Source: Anaeramoeba ignava BMAN (Eukaryota > Protista > Anaeramoebae). From it: 64,000 nt of DNA. Every line of letters starts with the position of its first letter. Position 1 is the first letter of the stretch. The notes beneath the pieces were generated by a model. It was not told the origin of the DNA, searched no databases, and was given only the letters and a program-made list of their open reading frames with translations. The stretch spans positions 248,001 to 312,000 of the forward strand of contig JAPDFW010000114.1 of NCBI GenBank assembly GCA_028826165.1, in the 5' to 3' direction. The position numbers and the translations under genes are program-made. This document shows positions 26,448-50,595 of the stretch, one piece after another.

Positions 26448-26518
26448 GAAGAAGTAGCTTAAAGGCAGAGTGTGAGAATCGGATCTCAAGGTTATTGGTT
26501 CGAATCCAATCTTCTTCA
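26448..26518 (+). tRNA. tRNA-like gene, dispersed member of the common-scaffold family; 6-nt anticodon loop (ATCGGA), isotype undetermined
   Basis: GAAGAAG/CTTCTTC acceptor, D arm GCTT-AAAGGCA-GAGT, TGAGA/TCTCA stem, ATTGG-TTCGAAT-CCAAT T arm, downstream T run. Confidence 0.75.
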
Positions 26519-38689: not shown

Positions 38690-40240
38690 AAATTTAAACA
38701 AAATTTATGAAACAATTTAACAAAATTTATAAAACAATTTATAAAACAAATTTATCAACAAATTTATAAAATAATTTATGAAATAATTTAACAAAACTTA
38801 TGAAACAATTTAACAAAACTTATGAAACAATTTATAAAACAATTATAAAACAATTTCTAAAACAATTTATAAAACAATTCATAAAACAATTTATAAAACA
38901 ATTTATAAAACAATTTATAAAACAATTTATAAAACAATTTAACAAAATAATTTATAAACAAAATTTATAAAACAATTTATAAACAAAATAATTTATAAAA
39001 CAATTTATGAAAACAATTTATAAAACAATTTATGAAAACAATTTATAAAACAATTTATAAAATAATTTATAAAATAATTTATAAAACAATTTATCAACAA
39101 TTTATCAAAACAATTTATGAAACTATTTATAAAAACAATTTATAAAACAATTTATAAAACAATTTATGAAACAATTTAACAAAACTTATGAAACAATTTA
39201 TGAAACAATTTATAAAAACAATTTATAAAAATAATTTATAAAACAATTTATAAAACAATTTATAAAATAATTTATAAAATAATTTATAAAATAATTTATA
39301 AAACAATTTATAAAACAATTTATAAAACAATTTATAAAACAATTTATAAAACAATTAACAAAATTTATAAAACAATTTATAAAATAATTTATAAAATAAT
39401 TTAAACAATTTATAAAACAATTTATAAAACAATTTATAAAACAATTTATAAAACAATTTATAAAACAATTTATAAAACAATTTATAAAACAATTTATCAA
39501 CAATTTATAAAATAATTTATAAAACAATTTAACAAAACTTATAAAACAATTTATAAAACAATTTATCAACAAATTTATAAAATAATTTATCAAAACAATT
39601 TAACAAAAATTATGAAACAATTTATAAAACAATTTATAAAACAATTTATGAAACAATTTATAAAACAATTTATAAAACAATTTATAAAACAATTTATAAA
39701 ACAATTTATCAACAATTTATCAAAACAATTTATAAAACAATTTATAAAATAATTTAAACAAATTTATAAAATAATTTATAAAACAATTTATAAAACAATT
39801 TATAAAACAATTTATAAAATAATTTATAAAACAATTTATAAAACAATTTAAACAAAATTTATAAAACAATTTATAAAATAATTTATAAAATAATTTATAA
39901 AATAATTTATAAAATAATTTATAAAATAATTTATAAAATAATTTATAAAATAATTTATAAAATAATTTATAAAATAATTTATAAAATAATTTATAAAATA
40001 ATTTATAAAATAATTTATAAAACAATTTATGAAACAATTTAACAAAACTTATGAAACAATTTATAAAACAATTTAACAAAATAATTTATAAAATAATTTA
40101 TAAAAACAATTTATAAAACAATTTATAAAACAATTTATAAAACAATTTATGAAATAATTTATAAAACAATTTATAAAATAATTTATAAAACAATTTAAAA
40201 CAAAATTTAAACAAAATTTATAAAACAATTTAAACAAAAA
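38690..40240. repeat. 12-bp satellite (AAAACAATTTAT)n
   Basis: Direct repetition over ~1.5 kb. Confidence 0.95.
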
Positions 40241-40263: not shown

Positions 40264-40335
40264 TGAAGATGATTGGATTCGAACCAATGACTTTTAGATT
40301 CAGAGTCTAACGCTCTACCTCTGAGCTACATCCTC
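40264..40335 (-). tRNA. tRNA-like gene, anticodon CTG (Gln)
   Basis: GAGGATG-TA-GCTC-AGAGGTA-GAGC-G-TTAGA-CTCTGAA-TCTAA-AAGTC-ATTGG-TTCGAAT-CCAAT-CATCTTC-A; full cloverleaf. Confidence 0.85.
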
Positions 40336-40516
40336 TTTTTTTTTTTGAAAAAAATTCTTTTAATTCTTTTAATTCATTTTTTCATTTTTTTCATTTTCAT
40401 TTTTTTCCTTTTTCTTTCCTTAACAATATAACGATAATAAATTTTCAATCTCATTTCAAAAATTAAAATCTATTTTTTAAAAAAAAATTTGAATTTAATT
40501 TAAATATATTTTGTTT

Positions 40517-40588
40517 TGAAGATGATTGGATTCGAACCAACGACCCTTAACTCGACAGGCTAATACTCTACCTTTGAGCTACATCTTC
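40517..40588 (-). tRNA. tRNA-like gene, anticodon GTC (Asp)
   Basis: Same scaffold; arm TTAGC-CTGTCGA-GTTAA. Confidence 0.8.
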
Positions 40589-40762
40589 TTTTTATATTAA
40601 TTAATTAATTTATTTATTTAAAAAAAATTTTGAATTAACGATATTATTTATAACTTCAAATTCAAATTCAAAATTGGATTAAAAATTGGATTAAAAATAA
40701 TTTGAATGATTCTAATATTATTTTATCAATTTATCAAATTTATCAAAAAAAATATTTTCTTT

Positions 40763-40834
40763 TGAAGATGGTTGGATTCGAACCAACGACCTCTGGATTA
40801 TGAGTCCAGCACTCTACCTTTGAGCTACATCCTC
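40763..40834 (-). tRNA. tRNA-like gene, anticodon CAT (Met)
   Basis: Same scaffold; arm CTGGA-CTCATAA-TCCAG-AGGTC, T stem GTTGG/CCAAC. Confidence 0.85.
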
Positions 40835-41323
40835 TTTTATTAATATTAATCAATATTAATTTATTTATTCAAAAAAAATTTTGAAATAACAGGATTATTT
40901 ATAACTTCAACAAAATTATTTAATTTAATAAATTCAATTCAAAATTAAATTCAAAATTAAATTCAAAATTAAATTCAAAATTAAATTCAAAATTAAATTC
41001 AAAATTAAATTCAAAATTAAATTCAATATCAAATTCAAATTCAATATCAAATTCAAATTCAAATTCAAATTCAAATTCAAATTCAAAATCCACAATAAAA
41101 TTGAATATTGAAATTGAAATAAAAATTGAATTAAAAATTGAAATAAAAATTGAATATTGAAATTGAAATAAAAATTGAATATTAAAATTGAAATAAAAAT
41201 TGGATACAAAACTAGATAAAAATGAAATAAAAATTGGATATTAAAAAAAACCAAAAAATTGGATTAGAAATAATTTGAATGATTTCAATATTAATTTATC
41301 AATTTTATCAAAAAAAGAATAAT

Positions 41324-41397
41324 TGAAGATGATTGGATTCGAACCAACAACCTTTAATTTGAGAAGTTATAACACTCTACCTTTGGGCTACATCTTC
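41324..41397 (-). tRNA. tRNA-like gene with 19-nt expanded anticodon arm (CTC/Glu if loop is TTCTCAA); possibly pseudo
   Basis: Same scaffold; arm TTATAACTTCTCAAATTAA; D stem GCCC variant. Confidence 0.65.
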
Positions 41398-41766
41398 TTT
41401 TATTAATATTAATCAATATTAATTTATTTATTCAAAAAAAATTTTGAAATAATAGGATTATTTATAACTTCAACAAAATTATTTAATTTAATAAATTCAA
41501 ATTCAAATTCAAAATTCACAATAAAATTAAAAATTGGATTAAAAATTGGATTAAAAATTGGATTAAAAATTGGATTAAAAATTGGATTAAAAATTGGATT
41601 AAAAATTGAATTAAAAATTGAAATAAAAATTGGATACAAAACCAGATAAAAATGAAATATAAATTGGATATTAAAAAAACCAAAAAAATTAAATTAAAAA
41701 TAATTTGAATGATTTCAATATTATTTTATCAATTTATAAATTTTATCAAAAAATATATATTTCTTT

Positions 41767-41840
41767 TGAAGATGATTGGATTCGAACCAACAACCTTTAA
41801 TTTGAGAAGTTATAACACTCTACCTTTGAGCTACATCTTC
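41767..41840 (-). tRNA. tRNA-like gene with 19-nt expanded anticodon arm; possibly pseudo
   Basis: Same scaffold; arm TTATAACTTCTCAAATTAA. Confidence 0.65.
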
Positions 41841-42252
41841 TTTTATTAATATTAATCAATATTAATTTATTTATTCAAAAAAAATTTTGAAATAACAGGA
41901 TTATTTATAACTTCAACAAAATTATTTAATTTAAAAAATTAAATTCAAAATTAAATTCAAAATTAAATTCAAAATTAAATTCAAAATTAAATTCAAATTT
42001 AAATTCAAATTCAAAATCCACAATAAAATTCAAATTCAAATTCCACAATAAAATTGAATATTGAAATTGAAATAAAAATTGAATATTGAAATTGGAATAA
42101 AAATTGGAATAAAAATTGGATACAAAACTAGATAAAAATGAAATATAAATTGGATATTAAAAAAAACCAAAAAATTAAATTAAAAATGATTTGAATGATT
42201 TCAATATTATTTTATCAATTTATAAATTTTATCAAAAAATATATATTTCTTT

Positions 42253-42324
42253 TGAAGATGATTGGATTCGAACCAACAACTTTTAGATTATGAGTCCAGC
42301 ACTCTACCTCTGAGCTACATCTTC
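42253..42324 (-). tRNA. tRNA-like gene, anticodon CAT (Met), chimeric anticodon stem
   Basis: Arm CTGGA-CTCATAA-TCTAA-AAGTT. Confidence 0.75.
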
Positions 42325-42765
42325 TTTTATTAATCAATTAATCAATATTAATTTATTTATTCAAAAAAAATTTTGAAATAACAGGATTATTTATAACTTC
42401 AACAAAATTATTTAATTTAATAAATTAAATTCAAATTCAAATTCAATTCAAATTCAAAATCCACAATAAAATTGAATATTAAAATTGAAATAAAAATTGA
42501 ATTAAAAATTGAATATTAAAATTGAAATAAAAATTGAATTAAAAATTGGATTAAAAATTGGATTAAAAATTGGATTAAAAATTGGATTAAAAATTGAATT
42601 AAAAATTGGATTAAAAATTGGATTAAAAATTGGATACAAAACTAGATAAAATTGAAATAAAAATTGGATATTAAAAAAAACCAAAAAATTAAATTAAAAA
42701 TAATTTGAATGATTTCAATATTATTTTATCAATTTATAAATTTATCAAAAAATATATATTTCTTT

Positions 42766-42839
42766 TGAAGATGATTGGATTCGAACCAACAACCTTTAAT
42801 TTGAGAAGTTATAACACTCTACCTTTGAGCTACATCTTC
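42766..42839 (-). tRNA. tRNA-like gene with 19-nt expanded anticodon arm; possibly pseudo
   Basis: Same sequence as copy at 41767-41840. Confidence 0.65.
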
Positions 42840-43188
42840 TTTTATTAATTTTAATCAATATTAATTTATTTATTCAAAAAAAATTTTGAAATAACAGGAT
42901 TATTTATAACTTCAACAAAATTATTTAATTTAATAAATTCAAATTCAAATTCAAATTCAAATTCAAAATCCACAATAAAATTGGATTAAAAATTGGATTA
43001 AAAATTGAATTAAAAATTGGATTAAAAATTGAATTAAAAATTGGATTAAAAATTGGATTAAAAATTGGATACAAAACTAGATAAAAATGAAATATAAATT
43101 GGATATTAAAAAAAACCAAAAAATTGGATTAGAAATAATTTGAATGATTTCAATATTATTTTATCAATTTTATCAAAAAAAGAATAAT

Positions 43189-43261
43189 TGAAGATGATTG
43201 GATTCGAACCAACGACCTATAACCCGATGTGCTAACGCTCTCCCCTCTGAGCTACATCTTC
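43189..43261 (-). tRNA. tRNA-like gene, loop ACATCGG (anticodon position ATC, no U33); possibly pseudo
   Basis: Same scaffold; arm TTAGC-ACATCGG-GTTAT. Confidence 0.65.
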
Positions 43262-43715
43262 TTTTATTAATATTAATCAATATTAATTTATTTATCAAAA
43301 AAAAATTTAAATTAAAAGGATTATTTATAAATTAAATATAAATTAAAATATAAATTAAATTCAAAATTAAAATATAAATTAAAATATAAATAAAATATAA
43401 ATTAAATATAAATTAAAATCGGATAAAAATTAAAATAAAAATTAAAATATAAATTAAAATATAAAATAAAATATAAATTAAATATAAATTAATTATAAAT
43501 TAAATATAAATTAAAATATAAATTAAATATAAATTAAAATATAAATTAAATATAAATTAAAATATAAAATAAAATATAAATTAAAATATAAATTAAAATC
43601 GGATAAAAATTAAAATAAAAATTTAATAAAAAAAAGGAAAAAAAATTTAAATAAAAAAGGAAAAAAACAATTTTTCAATTTTTCATTTTTTTCATTTTTT
43701 TGCATTTTTTTTTAA

Positions 43716-44416
43716 ATGGAAGGATTTCATTTGAAATGTTTTTGGTGTGAACAATATACACCTAAACCTTTTTTAATTAATTGTCAATGTGGAGCAGTTT
43801 ATTGTTTTAGTTGTTTTTATTATAAAGTATTAGGAAATCTAGAAGGAAAATGTTTTAATTGTAAAAAATTGATACCAATAGAAAATTACACAAACGAAAC
43901 AGGACTTGAAAATATGAAGATATCAACAGAAAAAATAAAATCAAATGAAGATGAAATGAAAGTAGTAGAAGCTCTTATACAAGCACAAGAAAAAGGAAGA
44001 CAAAAAATGGCTTGTCCTTATTTGGAATTTGATGGTATTTGTAAACTTAAGGATCATATCGAGCATAGATTTGAACCCCAAATGTTAAGGCTTCATAAAC
44101 CTGAAATTGTTGTTTGTCCAAATTTATTTAAACCTTGTGATAATCCAATTTGTCCTTATCAACATCCAAATTTAAAAGAGATTCAAAATGTTATTCAAAA
44201 AGATACAAGAAAAATAAAATTAGACAAAGTTTGTGATTAGATTTTAATATTAATATTAATTTTAATTTTAATTTTAATTTTAATTTTAATTTTAATTTTA
44301 ATTTTAATTTTAATTTATTGATTTTAATTTTAATTTTAATTTCTTAGTTTGTCTTAATTATTTTTATCAAGGTCGAATGTCCTAATTATGGTTGTCCTTT
44401 TGAACATAAAAGATAA
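43716..44416 (+). CDS. Small RING-like + CCCH zinc-finger protein
   Basis: CFWC..CQCGAVYCFSC..CFNC, then C/H fingers (CPYL..C..H, CPNLFKPCDNPICPYQH); probable intron 44233-44347 and a last finger CLNYFYQGRCPNYGCPFEH that needs one extra A removed near 44376. Confidence 0.65.
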
Positions 44417-44499
44417 TCTTCTTCTTTTTTTCTTCATAATTTTCTTTTGTTACAAAAAAAAATTATAATAATATTAATGGAAAAATTTCCAATAATATT

Positions 44500-44571
44500 T
44501 GAAGATGACTGGATTCGAACCAATAACCTTTAGATCTGGAGTCTAACGCTCTCCCTTTGAGCTACATCCTC
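44500..44571 (-). tRNA. tRNA-like gene, anticodon CCA (Trp)
   Basis: GAGGATG-TA-GCTC-AAAGGGA-GAGC-G-TTAGA-CTCCAGA-TCTAA-AGGTT-ATTGG-TTCGAAT-CCAGT-CATCTTC-A. Confidence 0.85.
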
Positions 44572-46363: not shown

Positions 46364-47878
46364 TTAAATGAAATAAGTTTCAAGTTCATCAACAATCCAT
46401 TTATTATAAGAACCAGCTAAATAATTTTTAGCTTCATTTGATTGATGAGTTATTCCATTAGGTAGATTATAACTAAAACCAAAATTTGAATAACCAGGTT
46501 GTAAATTAGAATTTAAATAAAAATCATTTCCACCACCAAATAATGGACCATACCTTAAACTAGAACAAATTGCACGACCTTTGCCATTATATGTAAACTT
46601 TGCAGGTATTCTATCCCCTTTATCATTTCTTAATGAAAAAATAAATGCATTTGAATCATTAATGTTTTCTTCACTTGTTGAATTTTTAAATCCAACTTGA
46701 GTAAAACCTCCAAAAATAAAATTATCTTTTGTTTTGATAATAACTAATGTTTTTCCTTTCCAATCAACTTTTGAATGCCAATTTTGAGAATTAAATCCAT
46801 CTTTTTTTGCTGAAAATCCTTTTTTCATTTTAGAAAAAAAATCATTATCATTTATCCATTCTTGTAATTTCTTAACATATTCAATATCTTGAACAATTTC
46901 TGAATCTGAAAATGCTTTCATTTGTTGTTCATATTCCAAATCTTTTTGATATTGATCTCGATATTTATCAAAAATAGGTTTCATATCTTCAACTTCTTTC
47001 TTCCATTTCTCTTCAATTTCTTTCTTTAAATTGTGATTTTCTTTTCTTTTCAAATTTATTTTCTTTTCTTGGTTCTTATTTTCTTGAATAACTTTGTTTT
47101 GAATATCAACTAAAAAAGATTTAGGAAGAAAAATTTGAAATTGTTTTAATTTATCAAAATCTTGTTTTGAAATTGAATCTTTATCAAATAATGAAAAAAA
47201 AGAATGAAATAATCTTTTCTTTGCATTCATTTTGTGTTCATCTTTCTTTAATTTTAATCTTTCGTTTCTTTTTTTAATCCAATTATTTAAAAATTGAAAA
47301 AAATCAAATTGAAAAATTTCTTTTTTTTCTTGTTTAAATTGAATAAATTTGATAATTTCTTCTTTAGTTAAATTGAATAAATTTTCATTATTCTGAATTT
47401 GGGAAAAATTTTGATTTATTAATTCAAAACATTTTATTTCAATTTCATTTGAATTTAAATTTCGATTTTGGAATAAAAATTGGAAAAAAATTTTAATTGA
47501 ATTTGAAATTTTTTTTGAATAATTTCTTTCAATAAATTTAATTTAAAATAAATTGAAATTTTCAATAATTGAATTGATTTTGATAAGAAAAATATTTCCA
47601 TAATAAATATAACTCAAAATTGATTCCATTTCTTTTTTATTAAATTGATTTAAAGAAATAGAAAGAGATTCTTGCCTTTATGACTCATTAAAAAAAGGAG
47701 ATCTTGAAGATAAAATTGATTTATGAACTTTAATTTCAAAAGAATTTGATTTATTCTCAACAAAAATTGAATAATCTGTAAATGATTCATTGGATAAAAT
47801 ATTGGAATAATCTTGCTTTAAGTTTTTTGTTACTGATTGTTCATAATCTGTTTCTTGTTGATTTCTGTTGTTATTCAT
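46364..47878 (-). pseudogene. BTB/BACK-TLDc family gene, disrupted in its 5' half; TLDc part open
   Basis: BTB start (FTDYSIFVEN..IKVHKSILSSRSPFF), in-frame TAA at 47678-47680, further frame breaks, then TLDc (FSAKKDGFNSQNWHSKVD.KGKTLVIIKTKDNFIFGGFT..GPLFGGGNDF..VDELETY). Confidence 0.8.
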
Positions 47879-48813: not shown

Positions 48814-50595
48814 TTAATTTTGATTATTAAATTTATTAATTAATAAATCAAATAAATTTGGATTTGTTTGATTTAATTGAAAATAATCAATTCCAATTTG
48901 AATTTCATCAATAATTTCTTGTGTAATTTGAATTTCATCTTTAATTTGATTTGAATAAATCCAATATTCAAATATTTGAAATGATTTATTACTTAATTCA
49001 CTATAATCTGTAACTTTATTAGAAATATCATCTGTTACAGATAAAAACATTCCTCGATATAATTCACTTCTCATTATTAATATTAATTTAGGAAATTTAT
49101 ATTGTTTTTCTTTTCTTTCAATAATAAAATCTTTTTCATTTTCATTTTCATTTTCATTTAAATAAATTCTTTTCATTGTTTCTTCAATCTTTTCATTTGA
49201 ATTTATAATTTCTTTAATTTCTGAATATAATTTTGGATTTATTATTCTGTTTGAATAAATCATTTCAAATATTTGATTTGATTCTTTAATTGATTTTTTT
49301 GAAATAATTTCTTTAAGTTTTTCAATTTGATTTTGATTTTGATTTTGATTTAATCTATATTTTAATATTAATTTATGAGCTTCAATTATTTCTCCATTTT
49401 CGGTTTTAAATGAAATATTACAAAATTCTTTTCTTCTAAATAATTTTATCAAATCTTCTTCAAGATTGGAAAAAGAAGAAGGAGAATAATAAAGAAATGA
49501 ATTGTGAAATCCACAAGAAATATGATAATTGGAAATATTTTCATTAAATCTTAATTTAGGAATTTCAATTTGAATTGGAATTAATTGTTCATTTGTATTT
49601 CCAGTTCCTAATTCACCAGAATAATTATTTCCAAATCCAATTAATTTTGAATTAGAAGTTAAAATCAAAGTATGGAAACAACCAACAGAAAAATCAATAA
49701 TATTATCATCATCTTCAAATAAAGATGATTTGATTTCAGTAAATTCATAAGTATTTTGATATTTTCCGAGACCATTATATCGATAATCTCCACATGAATA
49801 AAGTTTTCTTTTTGGATTTTGATCTTCAATCAACATTATTGAATGGGAATCTGCACATTGAATATCAATTATTTTGCCTTTTGGAATATTTTGTATTTTG
49901 GTTAATTTATAGATTTCTTTTCCAATTAACGATTTTCCTAATCCAAGTTGACTATATTTATTATATCCACATCCAAATAATTCTTGATTTGAATTTAAAA
50001 GAAAAACATGATCTGAAGCATTTCCTGAAAATATTTTAGAAACATTTTTCATCATTAAAATTGGTTTTTCTGTTTTTTCAAGTGTTTTAGAATCAAAACC
50101 AAGTTGACCAAAATCATTTGAACCAATTCCATAAGCATTTTGATTTGAAGTTAATAAGTAAACCGAACTGTATCCAGAAACAATATCTTCAATTATTCTA
50201 TCGTTTGCATCTTCAATTAATGATGAAATATTGATAAATTCTTTTGGATTTTTTGGATTAATATATTTTCCTTTGGCAAATACTTTTCCTTCTTTTGTTA
50301 AAATAGCTTCATTAAAATAACCAACAGTTACTTTTTGAATATTTTCTTCAATTTGGATTTTTGAAGGATTTGGATTTGGATCATTTTCATTTAGATATTC
50401 TATTGCTTTTCCATTTTCAAAAAGGAAAATTGTTGAAAACTTTGATAATGAAATTTGTTTAATTTGTTTTTCATTTTCATTTTCATTTTCATTTTCATTT
50501 TCAAATTTAAATTGAATTGGTTTTGTTATTTTTTTTGTTTCATTTTTTAAAAGAGTTGGATATTGATTTAAACCAAAAAATAAAATTTCATTCAT
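48814..50595 (-). CDS. RCC1-repeat + BTB-like domain protein
   Basis: GSNDFGQLG, GYNKYSQLGLG, SVGCFHTLIL..GNNYSGELGTG repeats, followed by FCNISF..IEAHKLILKYR and a second BTB-like block. Confidence 0.9.
   Translation of the reverse strand: MNEILFFGLNQYPTLLKNETKKITKPIQFKFENENENENENEKQIKQISLSKFSTIFLFENGKAIEYLNENDPNPNPSKIQIEENIQKVTVGYFNEAILTKEGKVFAKGKYINPKNPKEFINISSLIEDANDRIIEDIVSGYSSVYLLTSNQNAYGIGSNDFGQLGFDSKTLEKTEKPILMMKNVSKIFSGNASDHVFLLNSNQELFGCGYNKYSQLGLGKSLIGKEIYKLTKIQNIPKGKIIDIQCADSHSIMLIEDQNPKRKLYSCGDYRYNGLGKYQNTYEFTEIKSSLFEDDDNIIDFSVGCFHTLILTSNSKLIGFGNNYSGELGTGNTNEQLIPIQIEIPKLRFNENISNYHISCGFHNSFLYYSPSSFSNLEEDLIKLFRRKEFCNISFKTENGEIIEAHKLILKYRLNQNQNQNQIEKLKEIISKKSIKESNQIFEMIYSNRIINPKLYSEIKEIINSNEKIEETMKRIYLNENENENEKDFIIERKEKQYKFPKLILIMRSELYRGMFLSVTDDISNKVTDYSELSNKSFQIFEYWIYSNQIKDEIQITQEIIDEIQIGIDYFQLNQTNPNLFDLLINKFNNQN

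Follow-up and report, generated by a model that had tools for sequence, protein, structure and literature searches.

Eukaryotic nuclear genomes offer documented cases of alloacceptor anticodon shift (Rogers and Griffiths-Jones 2014, PMC3923123), nearly all of those reported being single-base changes of the anticodon in otherwise unchanged genes, one gene at a time. A tRNA array in the anaerobic amoeba Anaeramoeba ignava resembles these shifts (PMC3923123), as well as the remolding of mitochondrial tRNAs (PMC4783518), in that a duplicate keeps the body of one tRNA family and gains the anticodon of another. Unlike the nuclear cases, however, it carries at least four identities on one body within a single tandem array, its anticodon stems have also changed, with compensation, and two more such clusters occur in the same genome.

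The array also recalls those of Entamoeba (PMC2652664), likewise tandem tRNA units in an AT-rich protist genome, whose spacers are complex short tandem repeats differing in length. The Entamoeba arrays are said there to hold almost all tRNA genes of the organism and to occupy more than 10% of the genome, whereas the ordinary tRNA genes of A. ignava are dispersed, often in pairs, and their array, a small family, occupies a single locus and has one body. Like the silent clusters of Arabidopsis (PMC7544208, PMC12308677), it is made of tandem, redundant tRNA genes distinct from the dispersed, expressed population; but those clusters consist of tRNA-Ser and tRNA-Tyr genes whose silencing was measured, whereas in the A. 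ignava copies the signals that flank dispersed genes are mostly missing and expression is probably weak. Finally, three copies combine a non-alanine anticodon with G3:U70 and A73, which likens them to the G3:U70 mistranslators (yeast tRNA-Pro C70U, PMC5389508) and to the anticodon variants of tRNA-Ala (PMC10543346, PMC12084884). The mistranslators described in these sources are single mutants of normal tRNA-Pro or tRNA-Ala with measured charging, whereas the array body is not Ala-like and any charging with alanine is hypothetical.

One body in ten copies

The window analysed here is a stretch of 64,000 nt of A. ignava contig JAPDFW010000114.1. As the earlier note on this DNA had described, nine tRNA genes lie on the minus strand between positions 40264 and 44571, where both ARAGORN and Rfam RF00005 (50-77 bits) detect them; a tenth copy with the array body lies apart from the others. 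The features are given below, with cloverleaf energies in kcal/mol set against those of the MFE structure.

26448-26518, plus strand: t0, same body, about 14 kb from the array on the opposite strand; anticodon loop of 6 nt, stem TGAGA/TCTCA, compensatory change at acceptor pair 6:67 (ARAGORN, Rfam 57 bits, family model 86.5 bits)
38691-40232: satellite of 12-nt units, 1.5 kb, about 129 copies, adjoining the 3' side of t1 (Tandem Repeats Finder)
40264-40335, minus strand: t1, intact cloverleaf, anticodon CTG (Gln codon CAG), arm TTAGA/CTCTGAA/TCTAA; G3:U70 and A73; cloverleaf -16.4, MFE -17.7; T-run at +11, upstream ATAAGAA absent (ARAGORN, Rfam 76.7 bits)
40517-40588, minus strand: t2, intact cloverleaf, anticodon GTC (Asp), arm TTAGC/CTGTCGA/GTTAA; A3:U70 and A73; cloverleaf -14.7, MFE -20.7; T-run at +30 (ARAGORN, Rfam 69.1 bits)
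40763-40834, minus strand: t3, intact cloverleaf, anticodon CAT, loop CTCATAA, arm CTGGA/TCCAG; G3:U70 and A73; cloverleaf identical to the MFE structure, -20.7 (ARAGORN, Rfam 76.2 bits)
40835-43188: spacers of the young array core, with conserved proximal flanks and 12-mer microsatellites of variable length; higher-order periods of the core 443 and 486 bp (Tandem Repeats Finder, flank comparison)
41324-41397, minus strand: t4, damaged, 19-nt arm with just 3 pairable stem positions; C12:A23 mismatch in the D stem; cloverleaf -7.1, MFE -14.6 (ARAGORN, Rfam 50.2 bits)
41767-41840, minus strand: t5, damaged, 19-nt arm identical to that of t4 and t7; cloverleaf -8.7, MFE -15.3 (ARAGORN, Rfam 55.6 bits)
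42253-42324, minus strand: t6, chimeric arm, anticodon CAT; cloverleaf -14.0, MFE -17.5 (alignment, Rfam 66.8 bits)
42766-42839, minus strand: t7, damaged, 19-nt arm identical to that of t4 and t5 (ARAGORN, Rfam 55.6 bits)
43189-43261, minus strand: t8, degenerate relative of t2, nominal anticodon ATC; D loop of 8 nt (ARAGORN, Rfam 52.3 bits, alignment)
44500-44571, minus strand: t9, intact cloverleaf, anticodon CCA (Trp), arm TTAGA/CTCCAGA/TCTAA; G3:U70 and A73; cloverleaf -16.3, MFE -16.7; the sole array copy with ATAAGAA, at -58 (ARAGORN, Rfam 70.0 bits)

Pattern searches and a covariance model confine the array body to these ten places in the 42.8 Mb A. ignava genome, all of them within 18 kb on one contig. 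The model built on the family gives its ten copies 82-97 bits and its next match, an odd tRNA-Cys elsewhere, 68 bits; ordinary tRNA-Ala genes score nowhere near the family. With RF00005, t1 has the top score in the genome list and t3 the second best. The array is one local tRNA family, not a dispersed repeat.

Alignment of the copies recovers the near-invariant body that had been noticed earlier: the acceptor is GA(A/G)GATG / CATCTTC and the discriminator A, a perfect B box (GGTTCGAATCC) is present in ten of ten, and the D-arm region is highly conserved. Variation is concentrated in the anticodon arm, again as had been claimed, with every one of its 19 columns variable as against 17 of 56 in the body (Fisher p = 3e-8). 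The covariation reported for the stems is likewise real: 96.3% of stem cells are paired, both partners have changed in five pairs, of which the anticodon stem has four, and none of 500 shuffles matched this combination of pairing and two-sided change. The 15:48 tertiary pair fits in seven of the ten copies, as G15:C48 or A15:U48.

The variation within this family is non-neutral, and the body changes more slowly than the upstream flank: t2 and t5 differ at 2 of 55 body positions but at 22 of 90 in the alignable upstream flank (p = 0.0009), and t9 and t5 at 5 of 55 and 29 of 90, respectively (p = 0.001). Simple drift does not predict that the acceptor stem stays invariant while the anticodon stem covaries freely, which counts against the reading preferred below. 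Structurally intact cloverleafs number four (the CTG, GTC, CAT and CCA copies t1, t2, t3 and t9), and in the other six of the ten copies the anticodon arm is damaged by a 6- or 9-nt loop, by C33 or by a mismatched stem. The possibility raised earlier of a dead tRNA-derived repeat captures part of the pattern: half of the copies are visibly broken, but the older members look structurally constrained, not dead.

Arms reshuffled by recombination

To call the arms unrelated, as the earlier note did, was an overstatement, and they are related to each other and not foreign. Five arm types are well formed and three are damaged (the arm common to t4, t5 and t7, the t6 chimera and t8), most having one stem type and few substitutions. 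The stem TTAGA/TCTAA is common to t1 and t9, which differ only in the loop, and the stems of t3, t2 and t0 are one or two compensatory pairs away from it. Minus the anticodon triplet, the t1 arm is that of A. ignava tRNA-Arg(TCT) and the t9 arm that of the ordinary tRNA-Arg(TCG), the ordinary tRNA-Trp arm being 2 differences away from t9; the loops of t0 and of t4, t5 and t7 resemble damaged Arg(TCG) and Arg(TCT) loops. The t8 copy, listed earlier under ATC, has that anticodon nominally, but in a defective arm where C33 replaces U33 and one stem pair is mismatched.

The flanks of copies 3-8 are nearly identical, as had been observed: the upstream 90 nt of copies 3-7 have 0-5 differing positions, and two types of flank lie downstream. 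Arms do not follow these flanks. The upstream 90 nt of t3 and t5 are identical, yet their arms differ at 10 positions (p = 2e-9), and t4 and t8 have 1 difference in 70 downstream, yet 9 in the arm (p = 1e-6). In t6, the 5' stem strand and loop are t3-like (CTGGA CTCATAA) and the 3' stem strand, with the beginning of the variable loop, t1-like (TCTAA AAGT), and because its stem strands come from these two types it loses two of five stem pairs. Informative sites of the body were compared pairwise, and 14 of 15 comparisons contain all four gametes. Flanks, body sites and arms are thus mosaics across units, and this points to unequal crossing-over and short-tract gene conversion; recombination is pervasive in the array, whose spacers are filled with microsatellites (Tandem Repeats Finder).

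The order of events that we infer begins with one divergent, AT-rich tRNA gene, which would have been duplicated inside satellite-rich DNA. Its arm would have changed chiefly through point substitutions, accompanied by compensation in the stem, a process called alloacceptor anticodon shift or tRNA remolding, while unequal crossing-over and short-tract gene conversion between conserved gene halves would have reshuffled flanks, body sites and arms, leaving the same flanks with different arms, the chimeric t6 and a broken arm in triplicate (t4, t5 and t7). With moderate confidence, we take the array to be a tandem family of tRNA duplicates, specific to this lineage and shifted in their anticodons, of which some are dead; it would have formed by ordinary duplication, mutation and recombination.

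These ordinary processes explain the pattern better than would a dedicated cassette machine. The earlier proposal of a cassette system for new specificities finds no support if a dedicated mechanism is meant: the number of arms is small, they are interderivable by few substitutions, ordinary recombination reshuffles them, and the neighbouring genes, as annotated by Pfam, include no recombinase or reverse transcriptase. The best supported of the three options offered earlier was a tRNA-derived mobile repeat diversified by gene conversion, of which the conversion stands and the mobility does not, this being a strictly local tandem family. If gene conversion is as frequent as the four-gamete result implies, however, five distinct well-paired arms that survive it suggest selection on the arms, and this would favour a functional alternative.

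Expression, charging and alternative explanations

Ordinary genes with GC-richer bodies for tRNA-Trp(CCA), Gln(CTG), Asp(GTC) and Met(CAT) sit elsewhere in the genome, so that the question of whether canonical-body tRNAs also exist for these anticodons is answered for all four, and the array is therefore redundant. Its members are far more alike mutually than they are to the same-anticodon genes of their own genome. In a partial sample of ordinary tRNAs (55 loci, 35 species), the motif ATAAGAA occurs at -29 to -62 in 32 of 51 genes, against a background of 1.3%, and in the array it occurs in 1 of 10 copies (p = 0.004); this candidate promoter is a correlation from the present comparison and is absent also from 19 of the 51 ordinary genes. 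The T-runs noticed earlier some 10-20 nt downstream are present, but they start at +8 to +30, later than in ordinary genes (+1 to +12, mostly +1 to +6). Transcription, if any, would rely on RNA polymerase III and on the internal promoter, which is intact and has a perfect B box, and since ATAAGAA and an immediate terminator are mostly missing from the copies, expression is probably weak.

As to the candidate charging enzymes, GlnRS, AspRS, MetRS and TrpRS all read the anticodon. The array could then be a selected multi-specificity set of working tRNAs, each charged according to its anticodon, with conversion homogenising bodies and flanks, selection or sequence heterology keeping the arms distinct, and the broken copies arising as recent by-products. 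Such a set would account for the high scores of t1, t2, t3 and t9 (69-77 bits), for the compensatory changes in the anticodon stem and at acceptor pair 6:67, for the fit of the 15:48 pair in seven of ten copies, for the conservation of the body relative to its flanks and for the persistence of distinct arms despite pervasive conversion; in t9, G1:C72 and A73 are as in ordinary tRNA-Trp and ATAAGAA is in place at -58. We nonetheless consider this unlikely. Ordinary genes serve all four anticodons, the usual flanking signals are missing, six of ten copies are damaged, and the AT-rich stems are weak, the intact cloverleafs having energies of -14.7 to -20.7 as against -20.5 to -29.2 in ordinary tRNAs. 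In addition, t2 has A73 where the ordinary A. ignava tRNA-Asp has G73, and G3:U70 in t1, t3 and t9 conflicts with cognate charging.

Selection might instead act on the A and B boxes and the fold, and not on the arm, if the units had a function outside translation, either in binding TFIIIC/Pol III, as boundary or chromatin elements, or in giving rise to small RNAs. A perfect B box in every one of the ten copies and a highly conserved D-arm region, with an intervening arm that is free to vary, would agree with such a role, as would the position of the array in satellite DNA, and there are precedents in the silent or boundary-element tandem tRNA clusters of Arabidopsis and human (PMC7544208, PMC4041453). 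This role is nevertheless quite improbable: the conserved acceptor stem, with its compensatory change, and the paired anticodon stem point to constraint at the RNA level on a tRNA-like fold, and ordinary tRNA genes could provide Pol III sites just as well.

The combination of G3:U70 and A73 is found in exactly the three best-formed copies (t1, t3 and t9), and among the 35 other sampled tRNA species it is confined to the two species of tRNA-Ala. G3:U70 with A73 is the alanine identity set, and its presence in these copies gives a new argument to the earlier suggestion of mischarging or decoy tRNAs: AlaRS might charge all three regardless of anticodon. Two reports state that AlaRS does not read the anticodon (PMC10543346, PMC6055181). 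One G3:U70 pair was enough to turn yeast tRNA-Pro into an alanine acceptor, with about 6% mistranslation (PMC5389508). If these were natural mistranslators, alanine would enter at CAG, AUG and UGG codons, whether at a low level or under regulation, or else the copies would be kept silent as harmful. We find this decidedly improbable, in that a single transition opposite an invariant U70 separates G3 from A3 and may, in poorly expressed genes, amount to neutral noise, the body is otherwise not Ala-like (ordinary tRNA-Ala being far from the family model), and substitutions of Met and Trp by Ala would be costly.

Very improbable indeed is a decaying repeat whose arms mutate in bursts, with template switching in hairpin replication making paired stem changes in one event and without selection: this process creates and maintains perfect RNA hairpin stems (PMC8794818), and the changes do cluster in one short local hairpin between two promoter boxes of an AT-rich, repeat-prone region, but it leaves unexplained the U33, purine 37 and 7-nt loops of the four intact copies, the long-range compensatory change at acceptor pair 6:67 and the conservation of the body above its flanks.

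Other one-body clusters in the genome

The reading that we prefer, a tandem family of anticodon-shifted duplicates, concerns a locus that has counterparts. In a cluster on C93, ten genes combine a single Glu/Asp-type body with the anticodons GTC, TTC, CCC, ACC and TAC; in another, on C2, a single Phe-like body carries TTG, CAT, GAA and TTT in four genes. A Gly-type gene of the former is still Gly-like in its end pairs and arm, but in the inner acceptor and the T arm it matches its Glu/Asp-type neighbours; it looks like a product of body homogenisation between different isotypes, a resemblance that speaks for the selected multi-specificity set. With these two further clusters, anticodon diversification on one body is a general process in the A. 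ignava genome. A point against the preferred reading is that the whole-arm differences and four identities on the one body of the array are well beyond the norm of documented eukaryotic anticodon shifts.

One tRNA body confined to a single contig

Anaeramoeba ignava is an amoeba, anaerobic and free-living, and along the window GC content varies from about 13 to 36%. The nine minus-strand tRNAs that the earlier note had reported at window positions 40264-44571 (t1 to t9) were recovered both by ARAGORN and by the Rfam model RF00005, as was a tenth copy on the plus strand (t0, window 26448-26518), which has the same body in alignment. The ten score 50-77 bits with RF00005, against a gathering threshold of 29, and all possess the four arms of a cloverleaf. 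In their common body, likewise recognized by that note, the acceptor strands are GA(A/G)GATG and CATCTTC and the discriminator is A; the D-arm loop, A(A/G)AGG(T/G)A, is unusual, and the B box in the T arm is perfect.

Two pattern searches of the whole assembly (42.8 Mb in 147 contigs) located this body at ten places only, all within 18 kb of one contig. When a covariance model built from the ten copies (the family model) was run against the genome, the members scored 82-97 bits, and the next matches were an odd tRNA-Cys on another contig (68 bits) and an ordinary tRNA-Cys (64 bits). Because the body is restricted to ten places and bit scores drop outside the family, this is one local family rather than a dispersed repeat; a filter-free search of the window found no further fragments of it. 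A tRNA-derived SINE or other mobile repeat can be dismissed, since there are only ten copies, in 18 kb, and these are complete tRNAs without an appended SINE body. Nor is the array likely to be an artefact of misassembly, as its copies differ at many sites and lie within a 1.03 Mb contig.

Two sequences outside the family that resemble it, the first in the same genome and the second in a metagenome contig, are as follows.

G000:C56:352331-352402 (L058:5332-5403): odd tRNA-Cys(GCA), 68 bits with the family model, closest relative outside the family
ERZ1292644.13207 (L070:393-469): CCA-encoding tRNA-Arg(TCT), probably bacterial or phage, with an identical 24-nt 3' end

The odd tRNA-Cys has A as its discriminator, where the ordinary Cys gene has U73, and is like the window family in its D arm and variable loop. 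Leaving aside a few chance-like matches, the D loop A(A/G)AGG is confined to the window family, this tRNA-Cys and a cluster on contig C93. In an exact scan, the 24-nt 3' end of the family matched two metagenome contigs, both bacterial or phage-like in appearance: one bears the tRNA-Arg(TCT), whose acceptor and D arm are also similar to those of the family, and the other is a tRNA-bearing fragment. We judge this identity to be coincidental, tRNA sequence space being limited. The same exact scan, a weak test, found no match in viral contigs, so that on this test a viral origin of the family is unsupported.

Variation and mosaicism among the anticodon arms

Variation is concentrated in the anticodon arm, where 19 of 19 columns are variable, as against 17 of 56 in the body (p = 3e-8). 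The claim that the stems covary was borne out: 96.3% of stem cells pair, and five pairs are altered on both sides: four belong to the anticodon stem, and the fifth is acceptor pair 6:67 of t0. These values were reached in none of 500 column shuffles, a test in which related sequences may beat the shuffles without any structure, and slid-partner controls collapsed; the signal is still clear because the stem types TTAGA/TCTAA, CTGGA/TCCAG, TTAGC/GTTAA and TGAGA/TCTCA are distinct. To call the arms unrelated, as the earlier note did, is too strong, however: every arm column does vary, but there are shared stems, identical copies and a chimera. The arms of t1 (anticodon CTG) and t9 (CCA) have the same stem and differ at three loop positions; the stems of t3 (CAT), t2 (GTC) and t0 lie one or two compensatory pairs from it; t4, t5 and t7 carry identical 19-nt arms; and t6 (CAT) is a composite, its 5' strand and loop being those of t3 and its 3' strand of the t1 type.

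At every position but the anticodon triplet, the arms of t1 and t9 are identical to those of the ordinary (dispersed, isotype-typical) tRNA-Arg(TCT) and tRNA-Arg(TCG) of the same genome, and the arms of the ordinary Gln(CTG) and Trp genes show two differences (one compensated pair) from them. Since t1 and t9 are nearer to the Arg arms, with no exact donor tract, and no arm is an exact copy of that of a cognate ordinary gene, copying from cognate ordinary tRNAs is unsupported. In alignment, the t0 loop resembles the Arg(TCG) loop with a deletion, and the arm of t4, t5 and t7 looks like that of Arg(TCT) after two one-base insertions and decay of the stem. Plausibly, the ancestral arm of the family was of Arg type, and Arg(CCG) would be a plausible intermediate, CTG and CCA each being one transition away.

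Units 3-8 have a common proximal upstream flank and a downstream flank of two types. The 90-nt upstream flanks of t3 and t5 are identical while their arms differ at 10 positions (p = 2e-9); those of t4 and t8 downstream have one difference in 70 while the arms differ at 9 positions (p = 1e-6); and the broken 19-nt arm occurs with both downstream types. Within the 72-nt genes, all four allele combinations are present in 14 of the 15 pairs of informative body sites. Filling the spacers are 12-mer microsatellites, which vary in length and produce higher-order periods of 443 and 486 bp, and a 1.5 kb 12-mer satellite adjoins t1. Discordance among flanks, arms and body sites, together with microsatellite spacers, is the mark expected of unequal crossing-over and short-tract gene conversion. 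Acting between the conserved gene halves, these processes alone would yield identical flanks with different arms, the chimera t6 and the spread of the broken arm.

Dedicated cassette machinery is not needed to explain the array. The cassette or repeat-spacer system that had been proposed is also at odds with its content, which comprises five well-formed arm types and three damaged ones, with three identical copies and one chimera. Nine neighboring ORFs, a selection and not an exhaustive set, were screened, and none encodes a recombinase, reverse transcriptase or nuclease; they belong to ordinary host families (FG-GAP/fn3, TLDc, RCC1-BTB, AMP-binding and Med20), plus one orphan. A further suggestion, that of a mobile repeat diversified by gene conversion, survives in part: the mosaicism and the four-gamete result favor gene conversion, but ten copies in one 18-kb stretch do not make a mobile element.

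The orphan, a Cys-rich 174-aa ORF (window 43716-44240, plus strand), lies within the array in the interval from t8 to t9, on the strand opposite to theirs. Pfam gives no match for it; the sole database match is to the product annotated for it in A. ignava (193 aa), and look-up of that product found no other contig. The TLDc and RCC1-BTB neighbors (window 46364-47230 and 48814-50595, both minus strand) are each members of an A. ignava paralogue family that is both very large and recent: the RCC1-BTB protein has more than 700 matches, most at 80-85% identity, and the TLDc protein about 300 paralogue matches, none usable as an orthologue. A protein search with Med20, which adjoins t0, matched only itself and one weak match.

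Body and alignable flanks have not changed at the same rate. Between t2 and t5 there are changes at 2 of 55 body positions as against 22 of 90 in alignable flank (p = 0.0009), and between t9 and t5 at 5 of 55 as against 29 of 90 (p = 0.001). In a genome-wide RF00005 search that yielded about 2470 candidates, t1 and t3 have the two highest scores among the best 63, those that were scored. A body that changes more slowly than its flanks, along with these top scores, argues that the older members of the family, at least, are not simply dead repeat. Slow body change is also what ongoing gene conversion of the body would produce, and the paired stem changes could arise without selection by template switching at hairpins, a process able to make them (PMC8794818).

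Copy quality, flanking signals and the G3:U70 pair

Four copies are sound (t1, t2, t3 and t9), each having U33 and a purine at 37 in a 7-nt anticodon loop, and a 5-bp stem that is paired throughout. Their cloverleaf energies range from -14.7 to -20.7 kcal/mol; the cloverleaf of t3 equals the minimum-energy fold, those of t1 and t9 are at most 1.3 kcal/mol above it, and that of t2 is 6 kcal/mol above. The remaining six are damaged: t0 has a 6-nt anticodon loop; t4, t5 and t7 have a 9-nt loop and 3 pairable stem positions, their cloverleafs lying at -7 to -9 vs. a minimum near -15; t6 has two anticodon-stem mismatches; and t8 (ATC) has C33 and one stem mismatch. Against values of -20.5 to -29.2 for the genome's ordinary tRNAs, the AT-rich window family is comparatively weak.

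Comparison was made with a partial census of 55 other tRNA loci (L001-L055), in 51 genes of which a flanking element was scored; three loci chosen from B-box pattern matches held no tRNA, that pattern being too unspecific. Canonical-body genes for Trp(CCA), Gln(CTG) and Asp(GTC), and for Met(CAT) of the elongator type, were sought and found elsewhere in the genome, where they are richer in GC, and their existence makes the array redundant. With the family model, the ordinary Trp, Gln(CTG) and Met genes score 61, 49.5 and 52.9 bits, and Asp is not among the matches listed. The window-family body is thus nearer to genes with other anticodons than to the ordinary genes with the same anticodon, as remolded tRNA genes should be.

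The motif ATAAGAA lies at -29 to -62 (mostly -29 to -44) in 32 of the 51 ordinary genes, against a background of 1.3% per equivalent window, but in only one of the ten array copies (t9, at -58; p = 0.004 vs. ordinary genes). Long T-runs start at +1 to +12 in ordinary genes, mostly by +6, and at +8 to +30 in the array. Most copies thus seem to be without the flanking signals typical of expressed tRNA genes in this genome, the association of the element with such genes being a correlation. From this correlation, the missing ATAAGAA and the late T-runs, we infer that the array copies are probably weakly expressed. In this eukaryotic lineage, which has hardly been studied, the motif is itself a candidate for an upstream promoter element of Pol III.

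The three best-formed copies (t1, t3 and t9) read GAGGATG and CATCTTC, which places G3:U70 before A73; the other seven have A3:U70. Elsewhere, among 35 distinct tRNA species sampled, G3:U70 with A73 occurs in two tRNA-Ala species only. G3:U70 is the element that specifies alanine identity, and AlaRS ignores the anticodon (PMC6055181, PMC8583063); a single G3:U70 pair made a yeast tRNA-Pro an alanine acceptor, with mistranslation of about 6% (PMC5389508). Given this identity element, an anticodon-blind AlaRS and the yeast case, t1, t3 and t9 would, if expressed, be candidates to put alanine at CAG, AUG and UGG codons. We consider such insertion very improbable: G3:U70 with A73 is otherwise restricted to tRNA-Ala in the sample, but G rather than A at position 3 is a single transition opposite an invariant U70, and apart from G3:U70 and A73 the body is not Ala-like. 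The broader proposition, that arrays are re-armed by gene conversion and that t1, t3 and t9 are expressed and charged with alanine as natural Ala-inserting decoders of CAG, AUG and UGG, is a long shot; if true, these decoders would be regulated mistranslation or the raw material of codon reassignment. The body presumably bears a resemblance to a human tRNA-Ala. Its derivation from tRNA-Ala was rejected, as the A. ignava tRNA-Ala genes are not close to it and only G3:U70/A73 stands.

Further one-body clusters and the possible birth of tRNA specificities

The one-body pattern is not unique to the window locus. Following weaker matches led to two further clusters, listed here with one odd single tRNA.

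G000:C93:540774-545226 (L056:2774-7226), plus strand: second one-body cluster, about ten genes with a Glu/Asp-type body
G000:C2:756454-758751 (L062:4455-6752), plus strand: third one-body cluster, four genes of about 135 nt with a Phe-like body
G000:C71:170836-170906 (L065:4837-4907), minus strand: well-formed tRNA with anticodon CTA, 67 bits

The body of the C93 cluster reads TCAGAAG...CTTCTGA, with D loop AAAGGTA, and its anticodons are GTC (three times), TTC (twice), CCC, ACC and TAC, and a 6-nt loop occurs once; a single Gly-type member combines Gly-like end pairs and arm with the inner acceptor and T arm of its neighbors. In the C2 genes, which ARAGORN missed and Rfam scores at 43-50 bits, the anticodon stem is interrupted at position 28/29 by an insert, conserved and about 60 nt long, and the anticodon loops carry TTG, CAT, GAA and TTT. 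No gene of either cluster has ATAAGAA at the usual distance. The single tRNA on C71 has a Glu/Asp-like body and a T-run from +15, is without ATAAGAA, and its CTA anticodon would read the UAG stop codon.

Alloacceptor anticodon shifts occur in eukaryotic nuclear genomes, where 31 have been counted, nearly all of a single base (PMC3923123), and identity-changing shifts occur also in mitochondria (PMC4783518). Entamoeba has tandem tRNA arrays whose spacers are microsatellites (PMC2652664), and silent clustered tRNA genes are known in Arabidopsis (PMC7544208). Among the titles and abstracts listed for papers that mention Anaeramoeba and tRNA, none deals with tRNA gene arrays in that lineage. The locus is best filed as an unusually dense case of tRNA duplication accompanied by a shift of anticodon, with recombination in satellite DNA as the driving force; several identities at several stages are visible in it, the process of shift itself being already known.

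The identity of a tRNA is usually taken as frozen, each amino acid having its own tRNA body. Here, one body bears at least four anticodon identities side by side, and intact genes, a recombinant and dead copies make all stages visible together. Because the pattern recurs at two other loci of the genome, A. ignava offers a natural system for asking how new tRNA specificities are born, what share recombination and point mutation each have in moving anticodon arms between genes, and how the cell tolerates identity signals that conflict, for example a G3:U70 pair in tRNAs with Gln, Met and Trp anticodons. Should the copies be silent, the locus would be an instructive nursery of tRNA birth and death; should they be expressed, it would have a bearing on natural mistranslation and on how changes in the genetic code begin.
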